A stretch of 64,000 bases of DNA from Oikopleura dioica (GCA_907165135.1 OU015568.1:12896001-12960000), one strand, 5' to 3'; positions 24,579-30,574 are shown, numbered from the stretch's first letter. Translations and numbers: made by a program. Notes: generated by a model from the sequence alone, not told the origin.

Positions 24579-26024
24579 TCAGTAATATCGGTGAGCGAGC
24601 ATAATAGCGAATTCGCTCATTTCGGCCTTTGAGAAGCTATTCTTGTTGTTGTCGAAGTTGGCGTGAGAGCTGATCTCGTGGAAGCTGTTCATGTCCACAT
24701 TGAAGAGATATCGCAGGTTGTAGTACATGTCGAAGATCTCGGAGTGCTCAAGAACGTCTGAATAATTTCATTATCAGCTCCTAAGTTTTGTGATTTCTCA
24801 CCGTTGTGATCGGAATCGAAGATGTCGACGAGTGTGCTGCCGATGTTGGCATAGAAACCGGCAAAAGCCTGTTTGAATTCATCTTTGTCGAGGAGTTTGT
24901 CGTTGTTCTTGTCGAACTTGGCGAACTCATTGCTGATGAATCGGGGTGCGAATTTCGTGACTAAATATGAACCATGAAGATTTTTGGAGTTTCTCGAAAT
25001 TTTCAAATTTGATTTTGGTAAATGTAATCAAATCAAGACACAACATACATATGTACATATAAATATATGTACATATAATGTACATACAGAAGCTCGCATC
25101 TCTCCAGTGGCAGAAGTACATCATGTCTTGATCGATAGTCTTGCCATTGGCGCACTCGCGGAACGTCCTGGTGATCTCTTTGTCCCACTTTCCGTTCCAC
25201 TAAAATCATTATAATTTGAGAATAAAATTATCAAAAAGAAACTAACGGAAGAGAAGAGGCGCTCAGAGTTGTCAGATCGTCCGCTGTTCATCCAAAAATT
25301 GCTTTCGGTGACTTGATAGAGTTTGGACATGTCAGGATCGTGGTGAAATGAATCATGCTCATGCATTTCGTTGTTTCGGAAGTGATTGTCCCCTCGGTAC
25401 TGGTTTCTATTGAAATAAGAATCGCCCTGGTAATATTTGTTCTTGGGTCGGTAGCTGTCGTAATCCCGGTCGAAGTGGTTGAAAGAGTGTCGATCGTTGT
25501 ATCGCTTGAAATCGTTGAATCGGTACTTGTCAAATCCATATTGGTCCCGATCGTAAGAATGATCTCTTCTATGTTGATGGTGATCGTCGCTGTACTTCTG
25601 ATAAAACTTGGGGGAGTAGAAATCCGTCCGGTAGTCATCGTAGTGACGATTGCCAGAATATCTGTTGTTGTACGCATCCTTGTTCATTGGACCGTAGAAA
25701 TATCGGTCGCTGGAGTGTCGGTCGTTTTGGTAGTCCATTCGGTAGTCATCAAAATGACCGCCGTTGGAGTACCCGTAGCCGTTATTTCTATTGGAGTAGA
25801 AGCTTTTGTTCATCGGTCCGTAGAAGGGGCGATCGTTTGAGTATCTGTCATTTTGTCGCCACTATAAAAATAATTTATAATTCGCAAACAATTTATTTAA
25901 GCAGTTTTACCTGTCGATCGTAATCTTGGTCATAGATCTGTCGGTGATGATCAAATTGTCTATCAAAATCGTAGTATCGCTCGGCAACGCTAGCCCCAAT
26001 TAATCCTGCCGCTAAAAGCTTCAT
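24579..26024 (-). CDS. Secreted protein A: D/R/Y/H/N low-complexity domain + two EF-hands; 5 exons
   Basis: Signal MKLLAAGLIGASVA, about 210 aa aromatic/charged low-complexity region, WNGKWD...C...CHW module, EF loops DKNNDKLLDKDE and DSDHNDVLEHSE; all introns GT-AG. Confidence 0.88.
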
Positions 26025-26149
26025 TTTCAAATTTTGACCCTTTTTCGACTTTGTCAGATCAAGTGGGGGAATGGAACGATGGTAGCGCGACTTTATTCAG
26101 CAGCTTTTTACTGAACTCAACACGAGGTCAGAAAATTGCAAACATTATT

Positions 26150-26260
26150 CGTAAGAAAACTTGAAATGGACTTGAAGTGTACTCGCAATGACCTGCAAAT
26201 AATAAGCGTAAGAAAACTTCAAGTGCACTGCACTCGTGATGACCCAATAACTGCGTAAAC
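26150..26260 (+). repeat. Degenerate ~57-bp tandem duplication
   Basis: CGTAAGAAAACTT at 26150 and 26207, each followed by a similar ACTCG..ATGACC. Confidence 0.45.
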
Positions 26261-26716
26261 CTGGAATAAGAATAGGATTTCTATAATAGAAATTTTCTAT
26301 AATTTCTATGATTTCTATAATTTATGGTAGAAAGTTTATCATAGTTTTTTTTGAAGAATGTTGATAATATGAAATTTTTTGCCCCTTCCATAAAAAAATG
26401 CGACTTTTGAGACAATATGTTTTTTTTTTAATTTTTTATTATAGTTTTCAGTGATAACATGATTAACCAGTGTTTTCGATAAAAAGAGCTGTCAGTAGTC
26501 GAGAGTACTCCAATAAGATAAATTTCCAGTATTTTTCAGTGGTAACAGTTTTTCAATAAGATTGTGAGGGTAAGAATGAGATAAAGGAAAATTAACTCTT
26601 TGAGTTAAACTAAGCGAGGACACTTTATGAAAATTCCTAATAAAAAAGAGAATCTAAAGAGAAAAAAACGATGAGGAAGGAGAAGTAATCCCTAAAATGG
26701 TTGTTCGCGTCGAGTA

Positions 26717-27443
26717 TTAGTGATTTCTTCGAGATCGACGCTTGCTTTCTGCTCCTCGGGAATCTTCCAAATTGTCTGGGCCGGGCCGTTGCTTGATGAT
26801 GAACTTCTGGGTTCCTAAAAACAATGTTATTAATAAATCAACTTGATAAATATGATCTGAATTACCTCCGTATTGGAAGAGTTTGGCGGCGGTAACCTTG
26901 AGCCAGCGACGGTCCGGTTCGGAAGGGAAGAAGACGGAGTGGTCCTTGTTGACTTCATCGACGAAGAGTTTCGTCATCCATTTTTTGCTTCGTCCGTAGC
27001 CAGTCGTCTTGATTTTGCTCATCTGATGGATTTTCTCCTTGGTAACAACGCCTAGCTTCATAAGCTTTTTTTCGGCATCAACAAAGGAAAGTTCCATTCT
27101 TTCTCTTGGAGAATCGTCTTTGCTTTCAGGCTTCTCCGGGAAGCTGCCGAAGCCTATAATAATCCAATTAGTCCCGTTTTTCATGATAATGAGTTATTTA
27201 AATAAATATGTTGAATAATAGTGAGTTCTAATTACCGTATCGGAAGAGCTGCCTTGCCTCATGCTCGAGTCGGGTAGGATCTGGCTCGACAGAGAAGAAT
27301 TTGGAATAGTCTCTCTTCACTGCATCGACGAAGATTGTAGCCATATGCCGAAATCCTTTGCTTTTTGTCCTTTCAATTTGCTCTCTGGTCATTCTTCCGG
27401 CTTTGATAAGCCTTTCTTCAGCCCCAGCCTCGGAGAGATTCAT
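26717..27443 (-). CDS. Orphan protein with two tandem ~70-aa repeats; 3 exons
   Basis: Exon 1 LSEAGAEERLIKAGRMTREQI...FVDAVKRDYSKFFSVEPD...ARQLFRYG and exon 2 LSFVDAEKKLMKLGVVTKEKI...FVDEVNKDHSVFFPSEPD...AAKLFQYG; both are followed by phase-1 GTAATT introns. The start may lie upstream. Confidence 0.7.
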
Positions 27444-28473
27444 TACTGTCGTTAGTAGCTTTGAGAAGTTTTTTCTGAAAAAGTCAAGTCGGCGACTGGT
27501 TGAACTAGCCGGGTCAGGCTGGTCTTATAGGTTTCCAAATCTAGAGAATTTCATGAAGCGCGCCCACGAGTGAGCAACATGCGAATGGTTTGTTCTAGAA
27601 CGGGTGATAGATCCAGAGTCAACGCGCACGCTATTTTTAGGTTTCGCGCTAATCTGAGCGCGGCACTAACAGCGCCATCAAAGCGCTCTCAAAATGGTTA
27701 GTAAAAAAATGCGCGAAGATTTTTGCGTTTGAATTTCTACTAACTCGTCCTTCCTAACAAACGACAAACGTCATACCGACAAACTATTTGTTTCCCGCCA
27801 AAATCAAGAATACCGTTGCAAAAATTGAGCTTTTGCATCCCGAATAATCAAAATGATTCTTTTGCATTCCGAAATTTCAAAAATCGTTCATCTTACTGAA
27901 AGGAATGATTTGCGATCGATATCCCAGATATCCCTTAGCTGTTCATGCCCTTTATAAGTGACCCATGATTCTGTAAAAATCATTCGAAATAATTTATTTC
28001 AAATAATTTTATTTCAAATAAACCAAAAGACTCAGATTTAGTCAGAGTTTTTGTCAGAGTCTCGGTTGATTACGTATCATTAGTAATACAGTATTAGTAA
28101 TACTGTATTACATTGAGTTTATTAAACTCAAATGGTAATTTATTTCGAACAAGAAATCGAATAATATTGGGGATAATCCTCACACATTGAAGTAATAGAT
28201 AAATTATCTAAGATAATCCTTTGAATTTTTATGCACAAATTGCGCCGAATTCGTTCAATCCTTTGGCAAATGAACTTGAGAAAAGGTCAATGCTACATGA
28301 GTTCAATAATTTGAACTCGTGGAAACGAATGAGAATATTTGAATAAGCGAGAACTTGTAACGATTGTAACTGAACTCGTTGTTGACCTCAGATAATCCGA
28401 AGAAACGAGGGCGTATAAAACTGCACTGCCTGTTCTTGCTTCTCCACTTGAAAATCGAGCAAGTCGAAAAAAG

Positions 28474-29973
28474 ATGAAACTCGAAGTCGCAACTTTAATC
28501 TCGGCAGCTGCTGCTCACGGAAACTTTTGGGGACATGGAGGTCAACACATGGTAAGATAAAACCTTGATTTCGATGTTTAATATCTGAATTCTAGTGGCG
28601 AGGAAACGGCTATTTCCCGATGAACAACCATTTCGACTTCTATCAGGGCAACAACTACAACCAGATGGGTCGCTTTTACGGCAATGACCGCTTTATGGAT
28701 TACTACAACCGATATGTAAGTCAATTTACGATAGAATTAATTCAGTCTTCTTTGATTTCTCCTCAAAAATGTTTTCAGTGGGGAAATAACCAAATGCGCC
28801 ACTCTTATAACCAGTGGTGGCCACAGAACTGGTTCGGCGGAAACAACCAGTGGAACATGAGCCCTGCTTACAACTTCTACGGAAACAACTGGATGGGACG
28901 ATCATTTTACGGAAACGATCGATTCTATGACAACCAGTACTCTCGAAACTTCTACGGCAACAACAATTACTGGATGAACAACAACTACCGTTACAACAAC
29001 CAGTGGATGGATCAATACAACTACCAAGGCAACTGGATGAACAACTACCGTTACGGCATGAGCCCAGCTTACAACTTCTACGGCAATAACTGGATGGGAC
29101 GATCCTTCTATGGAAACGACCGATTTTACGACAACCAGTTTTCTCGAAGCTTCTACGGTCATAACAACTACTACAACAACAACTACATGATGAACCGACA
29201 CTTTGATTCTCAGTTCTTCTATGGAAACAACTACCACCGATTCAACAACTACTACAACAACAACTGGATGAGCTTTGGAAACAGCTTCTACGGACAGGAT
29301 TCTTTCTTCCAAATGGCTGAGCAATTTTTCTGGCGAAACTCGGAATGGAACAGCGACAACGCCGACCGAGTTCTTCGATCGGTAATTGACCTTTTTCGAT
29401 GGTAAGACTAATCTTTCTCTAGTGGCAAGGAAAATGGGATCAGTCGATGTTTCACTCCTTCGAAATGTGCGGAAACGGCCAATACGTCGACTACCAGATG
29501 ATGGTTAACTGCCACTGGACTTCTGACTCGCACATGAACATGGACTTTTGTAAGTGATTTCTTTTATAAATTGAAATTTGGTGCTAACCTTTCATAATTT
29601 AGTCTCTCACTTTGCTCCTCGATACATCAGCATGCATTTCCAATACTTCGACATGAACCGAGACGGACGACTTAACCCAGAAGAGTTCCGACGTGCCTGG
29701 GCCGGATTCTTCTCCACTGTCGGTTCCACCATTGTTGACATGTTCGACCGAGATCACAACGGTAAACTTATGCAATTTCTCCTCCGTTAATTTTGTTCTC
29801 CAGACATGATCGACTCCTACGAGATGCATGATTTCCAGTATTACATGAACTACTTCTACCCATCATCTTTCCAACACTCCCAAATGAGCCGATTCTTCAA
29901 CAACCACATGTACTCTTTCTCTAAGTGGGACATGACCGAGTTCGCTCTCCAGAATACTAACCGATGGTGGTAA
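28474..29973 (+). CDS. Secreted protein B: N/Y/F/W/M/G low-complexity domain + two EF-hands; 6 exons
   Basis: Signal MKLEVATLISAAAA, N/Y-rich region, WQGKWD...C...CHW module, EF loops DMNRDGRLNPEE and DRDHNDMIDSYE; paralog of 24579-26024. Confidence 0.88.
28857..29171 (+). repeat. Internal 114-bp (38-codon) duplication in protein B
   Basis: Copies at 28857-28970 and 29058-29171 encode MSPAYNFYGNNWMGRSFYGNDRFYDNQ[YF]SR[NS]FYG[NH]NNY. Confidence 0.9.
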
Positions 29974-30331: not shown

Positions 30332-30574
30332 ATGAGAATCTTGGCCGTTTTCTTTTTATTTAGTGATGCCAATATTTGCAACTTACCGGTAAGGGCATTC
30401 AGAAATTATGTGAGAACTTATCTGTAGGCTGAACGAGGCTGGTGCAGAGGATATCAACCGCATTACTTCCACAACAGAGGAACAGGAAAGTGTGAGCGAT
30501 TTATTTACGGAGGATGCAGGGGAAATCCAAATCGGTTCAAGACACAAGCTCAGTGCGAGAATGCATGTATCTGA
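30332..30574 (+). CDS. Secreted single Kunitz/BPTI-domain peptide (67 aa); 2 exons
   Basis: A GT-AG intron at 30389-30427 joins MRILAVFFLFSDANICNLP to AERGWCRGYQPHYFHNRGTGKCERFIYGGCRGNPNRFKTQAQCENACI*: six Kunitz cysteines plus the F.YGGC.GN.NRF motif. Not in the ORF track. Confidence 0.92.

Follow-up and report, generated by a model that had tools for sequence, protein, structure and literature searches.

What do two related genes that point away from one another in the genome of the larvacean Oikopleura dioica encode, and where would their products act? The genes, here called A and B, lie in a 64,000-nucleotide (nt) stretch of the OKI2018_I69 assembly (C1:12,896,001-12,960,000, on the pseudo-autosomal scaffold; hereafter the window). 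Each encodes a protein in which a signal-like N-terminus and a long, aromatic-rich low-complexity domain precede an EF-hand core. The original prediction, made from this DNA, took them for a head-to-head pair of secreted paralogues with opposite chemistries, which would form a calcium-triggered, two-component extracellular material. The reading we favour, at a probability of roughly 0.55, is that A and B are functional secreted paralogues with a calcium-loaded EF-hand head and a self-associating tail, and that they serve in an extracellular material. Further, both appear to belong to a family of secreted four-EF-hand proteins that is restricted to Oikopleura. The two genes were modeled as follows.

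24579-26024, minus strand: gene A, five exons (26024-25911, 25861-25247, 25199-25088, 24960-24802 and 24757-24579), 1179 nt and 392 amino acids (aa), with a frame that closes

28474-29973, plus strand: gene B, six exons (28474-28551, 28596-28715, 28779-29381, 29423-29549, 29603-29761 and 29804-29973), 418 aa

That these are intact, related genes was confirmed on several counts. The frames are open, all introns of both genes are GT-AG and 41-127 nt long, and the B model is identical, letter for letter, to the public O. dioica protein CAG5089230.1 (OKI2018_I69.PAR.g12138.t1); gene A has no public protein record in the protein collections searched. Exon 2 begins TGG CGA in both genes, and the four intron positions and phases that they were said to have in common (0, 0, 1, 1) were recovered, with one extra B intron, of phase 0, lying within its low-complexity domain. 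When B exon 5 was used as the query over the whole OKI2018_I69 assembly (64.28 Mb, 19 contigs), it matched A exon 4 with 55% identity at E 2e-14, so the similarity goes far beyond chance and the claimed paralogy is borne out.

The part of the proteins that can be aligned is a C-terminal core of about 180 residues, which starts about 30 residues ahead of W-x-G-K, in the sole segment of A exon 2 that aligns with B exon 3. It holds a Cys-clamped pseudo-EF loop and two canonical EF loops, and the predicted W[NQ]GKWD motif, the C-x14-C element that ends in CHW, and FAPR were found in both genes.

25088-25199, minus strand: A exon 3, with WNGKWD and a Cys-x14-Cys pseudo-EF loop ending in CHW; it aligns to the first helix-loop-helix of an AlphaFold2 (AF2) model of a paralogue

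29423-29549, plus strand: B exon 4, with WQGKWD and a Cys-x14-Cys pseudo-EF loop ending in CHW

24878-24913, minus strand: A canonical EF loop 1, DKNNDKLLDKDE, with ligand positions 1, 3, 5 and 12 read from the sequence

24738-24817, minus strand: A canonical EF loop 2, DSDHNDVLEHSE (DSDHN, then DVLEHSE), split by a phase-1 intron at 24758-24801

29650-29685, plus strand: B canonical EF loop 1, DMNRDGRLNPEE, matched by EF-hand_5 and EF-hand_1

29746-29823, plus strand: B canonical EF loop 2, DRDHNDMIDSYE (DRDHN, then DMIDSYE), split by a phase-1 intron at 29762-29803

Both canonical loops of both proteins, two per protein as predicted, are 12 residues long, positions 1, 3, 5 and 12 supplying oxygen ligands and position 8 being hydrophobic, and in an alignment their ligands are kept in all three subfamilies of the family (described below), whose synonymous sites are saturated. 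B, searched through its public record, scored 31.1 bits with EF-hand_5 (cut-off 25.9) and 30.0 bits with EF-hand_1 (cut-off 25.4), and EF-hand_6 matched two stretches of that protein, with an EF-hand_7 pair at E 1e-4 over residues 266-418. A, searched exon by exon, scored just under the cut-offs in a single exon (EF-hand_6, 24.0 bits against 25; EF-hand_1, 23.8 bits). EF-hand families (PF00036, PF13202, PF13405 and PF13499) are the sole Pfam families on A and B.

By alignment and structural model, the loops of the core run in the order Cys-bridged pseudo-EF, canonical 1, canonical 2 and a variant fourth. The fourth loop is EF-like, with a one-residue insertion (13 residues), in A, in its paralogue A' and in related proteins that consist of the core only, and bears ligands in A; in B it is degenerate, with its ligands lost. 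The AF2 model of a core-only paralogue (P0010; 20-row family alignment) reached a predicted local distance difference test score (pLDDT) of 73.6 and a predicted template modeling score of 0.71. Apart from short strand bridges in the loops it is all-helical, and it has four helix-loop-helix units. In a full-length Foldseek search, this model returned only four-EF-hand proteins (NCS-1, neurocalcin, hippocalcin, calmodulin, sorcin and calaxin). VIA-align gave Z 6.2 to 4zcu, the four-EF-hand domain of the ATP-Mg/Pi carrier, and, for residues 32-124 against S100P, Z 5.6 with a root-mean-square deviation of 3.5 over 82 residues; an ESM Atlas search found generic EF-hand neighbours only. For the modeled core, these scores show the common EF-hand fold, and not any specific relative. 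The core of A and B probably folds likewise as two EF-hand lobes, the first loop being clamped by a disulfide. The composition of the B core is biased like that of the B tail, with 9.9% M, 23% F, Y and W together, and 8.6% A, I, L and V together, versus 20-25% for the latter in its relatives.

Ahead of the core, the two proteins carry the following elements.

25983-26024, minus strand: A signal-like N-terminus, 14 residues, a hydrophobic run and then S-V-A before the mature end, with 9-residue hydropathy windows of 1.6-2.3

28474-28515, plus strand: B signal-like N-terminus, 14 residues, recognized by hydropathy, with A-A-A before the mature end

25352-25861, minus strand, plus 25911-25982 of exon 1: A low-complexity domain proper, rich in D, Y, N, R, S, F and H, with a net charge close to 0 and two FYGPMNK motifs

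28516-29297, plus strand, with introns 28552-28595 and 28716-28778: B low-complexity domain (the rest of exon 1, exon 2 and most of exon 3), rich in N, Y, F, G, W and M

Each low-complexity domain is about 230-250 residues long, 22-30% aromatic and low in entropy (3.46-3.67 bits), starts W-R with P-M-N soon after, and goes at most 13 (A) or 9 (B) positions from one aromatic residue to the next. Neither low-complexity exon matched a Pfam family at E <= 1. Such a disorder-type composition with regularly spaced aromatics, together with low model confidence over the same part, has the character of sticker-spacer or prion-like sequence; with the conserved ligand residues of the loops, it bears out the proposed joining of an aromatic sticker-spacer domain to EF-hands. 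FYG motifs, predicted for both proteins, number two in A (both inside FYGPMNK) and nine in B. The claim of opposite chemistries held in part. A exon 2 (13.7% D, 13.2% Y, 11.7% N, 11.2% R, 10.2% S, 7.8% F and 6.8% H; F, Y and W together 22%) is zwitterionic, its K+R equal to its D+E at 15.6% each, and B exon 3 (23.4% N, 13.4% Y, 10.0% F, 8.0% G, 6.5% W and 6.0% M; F, Y and W together 29.9%) is low in charge, with 7.0% basic and 5.5% acidic residues and no K, I, T or C at all; the two are not an anionic and a cationic partner. We infer from this composition that the domains, with an aromatic residue every 1-6 positions, would drive self-association through aromatic, Arg and Asn contacts, giving a gel, a coating or a fibre.

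The B domain contains an internal duplication (201 nt; 28856-28985 versus 29057-29186, 84% identical), and tail length differs widely among relatives. At about 80 aa, versus about 230 in A, the low-complexity domain of A' (L019:3582-4762, plus strand) is far shorter; that of a distant A-type contig (L027) is longer, and DRxFYGPMNKSFYSPS units recur in it; and B-type transcripts of the Tara catalogue encode 354 to 429 aa. Across the A and B types, tail length seems to vary freely, with composition kept.

Are these working genes? A second divergent pair, A' and B', lies at C1:4.65 Mb, with start codons 704 bp apart and no gene between them (B' is the public protein g9707), and an orthologue of A with five open exons was found in another O. 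dioica lineage (genomic contigs L023/L024; 86% nucleotide identity, about 0.6 synonymous substitutions per synonymous site, dS). Between A and that orthologue, the ratio of nonsynonymous to synonymous divergence (omega) is 0.05 in the core and 0.18 in the low-complexity domain, the latter being 75% identical and differing by whole-codon indels only. Between B and B' omega is 0.10 both in the low-complexity exon and in the core exons (core dN 0.052, dS 0.541). Because omega ranges from 0.05 to 0.18, both genes must be under purifying selection, low-complexity parts included, and A and B are, on these substitution patterns, functional, selected genes.

Transcripts agree for the B type. A JGI contig of 1310 nt (sample 3300018585) holds an uninterrupted 417-aa B'-type reading frame, from which, relative to the B' locus, exactly five GT-AG segments (42, 82, 42, 44 and 43 nt) are gone, at the positions of B's five introns. 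The splicing pattern of B-type genes is proven at the transcript level by this contig. More than 30 B-type transcript-derived proteins came from three Tara runs and one JGI sample. Marine metatranscriptome runs contain about one-fifth of the words of a 5.7-kb stretch, roughly the size of one mRNA. In our model, the B type would be the abundant product.

This evidence bears directly on a reading of A and/or B as decaying duplicates or annotation artefacts without function, which the missing public record of A and a premature stop in B' in OKI2018_I69, 11 codons before the usual end, might encourage. Every exon is open with GT-AG introns, omega is low versus orthologues and paralogues alike, A is intact in a lineage at dS of about 0.6, and a full-length spliced B'-type cDNA exists; the reading is largely refuted, and we give it next to no credence. 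As for the B' stop (C1:4651395-4651559; L019:1396-1560, minus strand), the public model ends likewise, at 399 aa, and B'-type transcripts of other populations run through to the usual ...NRWW end.

Both proteins have the signal-like N-terminus of 14 residues that was predicted, signal peptides being judged here solely from hydropathy plus small residues at -3/-1. All members of the family start with MK, a hydrophobic run and small residues, have exactly two Cys, and are without HDEL or KDEL. Secretion of A and B, as claimed, agrees with the signal-like N-terminus, the two conserved Cys and the lack of a retention motif, and each is probably made with a short signal peptide. A signal peptide plus EF-hands also resembles the CREC family, and the two proteins could instead be residents of the secretory pathway (CREC- or calsequestrin-like) that buffer calcium or act as chaperones, with the A low-complexity domain, at 15.6% D+E, as a low-affinity calcium store. 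CREC proteins (reticulocalbin, calumenin) have six EF-hands and a C-terminal HDEL-type retention signal; A and B have four helix-loop-helix units by the paralogue model, lack HDEL and KDEL, and end in RYY and RWW, respectively. In addition, acidic residues are matched by basic ones in the A domain and make up only 5.5% of the B domain, and neither Pfam nor fold searches gave a specific CREC link. We consider residence in the secretory pathway very improbable.

The family as a whole was delineated in the OKI2018_I69 genome, where B exon 5 matched at least 12 exons at related loci. It comprises three subfamilies: the A/B type, which carries a low-complexity domain, the core-only type, and the helical type, which has a helical, non-repetitive N-terminal extension. 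Core-only proteins have about 210 aa, and their genes form tandem arrays on C5; two lie at 3.12 Mb and two more at 3.31-3.32 Mb, next to a decayed copy. Also of this type are CBY31037 and CBY07442 from Norwegian O. dioica, which are annotated only as EF-hand domain-containing. Of the helical-type genes, two lie on C4 and a third at C1:5.99 Mb; C16 has an identical copy of the third. In the core tree, the A and B types form one clade (support 92/95) to which neither core-only nor helical-type proteins belong. This makes a single gain of the low-complexity domain, which only the A/B clade has, probable, and the W-R start and early P-M-N of both domains speak for it too.

Two of these loci call for comment. 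The first copy in the 3.31-Mb array (C5:3314247-3314375; L015:5067-5367) has an in-frame TGA and altered EF ligands and is probably a pseudogene. C16 is a 57-kb unplaced contig with the same helical-type match as C1:5.99 Mb, and is probably an unplaced duplicate or haplotig.

Beyond this genome, a word-indexed protein search returned only B-type proteins (OKI B, B', and Tara and JGI entries) and two A-type genomic fragments. HMMER with the B core against 1.84 billion representatives gave family-specific matches only to B-type, core-only and helical-type proteins, the rest being generic EF-hand proteins. No full A-type protein, transcript-derived or annotated, was present in the protein collections searched. 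One cluster from unlabelled marine metagenome contigs (P0033; pairwise E 7e-8) has a Cys-clamped loop and two EF loops like those of the family and may be a distant relative in another organism; it has 18 members, with proteins of 122-144 aa (contigs L025:2480-2851 and L026:975-1346). Another match, P0011, was rejected as an unrelated multi-EF-hand protein.

The arrangement of the genes raises the question of whether A and B work as a pair. The elements concerned are these.

26717-27443, minus strand: unrelated gene between A and B, three exons, two repeats of about 70 aa

26042-26066, minus strand: leader or putative initiator motif CCACTTGA-N9-AAGTCGAAAA at A, between an AATAAAG box, 30 nt upstream, and the start codon, 18 nt downstream

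28444-28470, plus strand: the same CCACTTGA/AAGTCGAAAA motif at B, between TATAAAA (28414-28420), 30 nt upstream, and the start codon, 4 nt downstream

26181-26193 and 26232-26244, plus strand: two copies of ACTCG-N3-TGACC upstream of A, from a motif scan

28374-28387, plus strand: ACTCG-N4-TGACC upstream of B, 100 nt upstream of its start codon and kept upstream of B'

The start codons of A and B are 2.45 kb apart and the genes are divergently oriented, as a head-to-head pair would be; adjacency failed, since the minus-strand gene at 26717-27443 intervenes. That gene has no Pfam family and belongs to a family of three loci genome-wide, the others being at C2:3.83 Mb and C4:7.74 Mb with two repeats each; a gene of its type is absent from the A'/B' locus. 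Divergence between the two pairs is uneven. Synonymous sites are saturated between A and A' (dS about 2.4), and A' falls outside the split of A and its other-lineage orthologue. B and B' differ at dS 0.54 and are 78% identical across the whole transcribed unit, introns included, with no alignment beyond it. The simplest history to fit these distances would be that the pair was duplicated long ago and that B later underwent gene conversion or was copied anew.

As to the motifs, CCACTTGA-N9-11-AAGTCGAAAA has two matches in the window, both at A and B, where none is expected. It recurs in the A orthologue, with a degenerate form in the distant A-type contig and in one core-only gene, and a TATA-like box precedes it at both genes, as would suit an initiator with a leader. 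ACTCG-N3-4-TGACC has three matches in the 64 kb, against 0.09 expected, and each of them lies upstream of A or B; none of 100 shuffles reached three. The motif is present also upstream of the A orthologue. Shared upstream motifs of this kind would be no proof of co-expression.

The original prediction went further, to A and B being co-expressed in the oikoplastic epithelium as the two components of a house material that condenses or forms fibres once calcium binds to the EF-hands. The divergent layout kept at a second, anciently diverged locus (A/A' dS about 2.4), the leader and ACTCG-N-TGACC motifs common to both genes, and the differing chemistries of the two low-complexity domains are all in its favour. 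Yet an unrelated gene splits the pair in the window, B-type mRNAs are common in metatranscriptome catalogues from which the A type is absent, and no EF-hand oikosin (oikosins being the proteins described from the house) has been published. Nor would the two domains be complementary polyions at seawater pH, where their estimated net charges are about -3 and +4. The calcium switch meets a further difficulty. Canonical EF-hands bind calcium with micromolar affinity, whereas the endoplasmic reticulum and Golgi hold 0.1-1 mM and seawater about 10 mM, so the loops would be saturated all along the secretory route and in seawater. We regard this two-component, calcium-switched scheme as rather unlikely.

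Since lumenal and seawater calcium lie so far above typical EF-hand dissociation constants, the reading we favour has calcium constitutively bound to A and B, keeping the head folded in a structural role and not acting as a switch. What, then, could set off assembly? By estimate, the low-complexity part of both A and B carries a net charge of about +12 at pH 5.5, from which it would fall to the near-neutral values given above at pH 8.1, a large change because of the histidines in these domains. A domain that is strongly cationic at granule pH and near-neutral at seawater pH would be a secretion-coupled trigger, and because the histidines cause so large a charge change, the pH jump at secretion is plausible in that role; going by composition, a histidine-based pH switch appears more plausible than calcium. 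Marine adhesive and structural proteins, such as mussel foot protein 3 and the histidine-rich squid beak proteins, are secreted, rich in Tyr, Gly, Asn, Arg, Trp or His, and set off by the granule-to-seawater pH jump. The loss of charge estimated for A and B from pH 5.5 to 8.1 fits this logic, although there is no sequence relation and the adhesive proteins are without a folded calcium-binding head. The destination would likely be the house or another extracellular matrix of the animal. A peroxidase-domain oikosin has been reported in the house (PMC3390340), and cross-linking of A and B tyrosines by it is purely speculative.

Several observations weigh against functional secreted paralogues with a calcium-loaded head and a self-associating tail. 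First, the fold model is that of the paralogue P0010, which is 34-38% identical to B (E 2e-25), rather than a model of A or B; for the B core, AF2 run on its sequence alone gave a pLDDT of 42. Second, the Foldseek scores are modest, with probabilities of 0.9-0.99 yet E >= 4e-3 and TM 0.2-0.3. Third, the pH-dependent charges of A and B are pK-based estimates. Fourth, an A-type transcript was absent from all catalogues searched, two metagenome scans included. Finally, no EF-hand occurs among the 80 oikosins of Hosp et al. 2012 (main text and supplementary similarity tables; PMC3390340).

This last point bears on destination. A check against the oikosin lists, suggested along with the original prediction, found no EF-hand domain listed and no named oikosin among the matches of the A and B protein searches, which speaks against A and B being described oikosins. 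The 2012 house proteome depended on the gene models of its time, which appear to lack A and B, and we found no Norwegian-strain gene model of either. Because mass-spectrometric identification depends on gene models, their absence among oikosins leaves room for a house role. A 2026 single-cell preprint makes no mention of such EF-hand proteins, and our literature search found nothing on an EF-hand house protein, on the A and B accessions, or on a link to luminescence. Oikosins are secreted, often lineage-specific and often in duplicated families (PMC3390340), and A and B are like them in these respects and in coming from the same organism; they are unlike them in their EF-hands, a domain missing from the published lists.

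Alternatively, A and B could be secreted structural proteins of some other product, such as the egg envelope, the gut or pharyngeal lining, a cuticular layer of tail or trunk, or oral-gland granules, possibly with tyrosines cross-linked by peroxidase. The secretory features suit such a product as well as they suit the favoured reading, the family is absent from published oikosin domain lists and from the named oikosins met in protein searches, and the genes around the pair are of ordinary types (ARM-repeat, leucine-rich repeat and PARP-like), with no oikosin cluster there. Nothing positive points to any particular tissue, however, and absence from the 2012 proteome may merely reflect missing gene models. 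A destination outside the house strikes us as doubtful, though a real possibility.

Composition suggests one further role. Like B, reflectins abound in Y, N, M, W, F and R and have little or no A, I, L, K and T, but they are intracellular, with a repeat motif of their own and no EF-hands, so the likeness is one of composition only; the reflectin profile did not match A or B (in Pfam, in the low-complexity exons at E <= 1, or in the whole public B protein). The refractive-index increment was estimated at about 0.212 ml/g for B and 0.205 for A, versus about 0.189 for two ordinary neighbouring genes, all three values being approximate. The B type, possibly with A-type partners, might make up a reflectin-like material outside the cell whose refractive index or ultraviolet absorbance is very high. 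It could be that of the refractile, fluorescent or luminous inclusion granules which oikopleurids place in their houses, and the EF-hand head would respond to seawater calcium only when a sealed granule breaks. This rests on composition (an increment of about 0.21, and aliphatics replaced by Met and aromatics even in the core), the secretion signals and the EF-hands, and we treat it as a long shot.

For the favoured reading, the nearest parallels in design lie among EF-hand proteins of other kinds. In SPARC/BM-40 (osteonectin), as Hohenester et al. are said to have found in 1996, a disulfide reportedly clamps one EF loop and another loop has a one-residue insertion. Like A and B, SPARC is secreted, with a disordered, charged N-terminal segment, a disulfide-clamped EF loop and a loop insertion. 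Unlike their family, it has a follistatin-like domain and one EF pair versus four helix-loop-helix units, and the SPARC_Ca_bdg profile scored 13.3 bits on A/B, under its cut-off of 22. The resemblance is better taken as one of design than as demonstrated descent. Neuronal calcium sensor (NCS) proteins, calmodulin and S100 give the best fold and sequence matches (sequence E about 1e-3), and S100 and NCS proteins also have a non-canonical first loop; they are, however, cytosolic sensors without a signal peptide, a disulfide or a low-complexity domain.

The flanks of B hold other features. About 360 bp downstream of it, a small gene (30332-30574, plus strand) starts with a signal-like exon and encodes a Kunitz/BPTI domain (61.3 bits, E 1e-16), another secreted product adjoining B. 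On the 5' side lie a 15-nt tandem repeat (27987-28021), a 12-nt repeat (28037-28060) and a palindrome with a 13-bp stem (28083-28111), which together may be the remnant of a small inserted element.

What appears to be new here is a lineage-specific family of secreted EF-hand proteins in which the A/B branch acquired tails of a prion-like or reflectin-like kind. Larvacean houses and other secretions are built largely of lineage-specific proteins, and this family offers a tractable case of their assembly, with a calcium-loaded folded head, a version that is the head only, and two versions of a tail of very different chemistry. It would allow a test of how a soluble calcium-binding protein may become an extracellular material, and of pH versus calcium as the trigger. 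Inventories of the house proteome may miss abundant secreted components, given that A and B are absent there and partly absent from annotation. Divergent pairing kept at two loci, in a genome of scrambled gene order, along with shared motifs, may provide a small system for studying co-regulation, and the extreme composition of B could be of interest for optical or adhesive protein materials.

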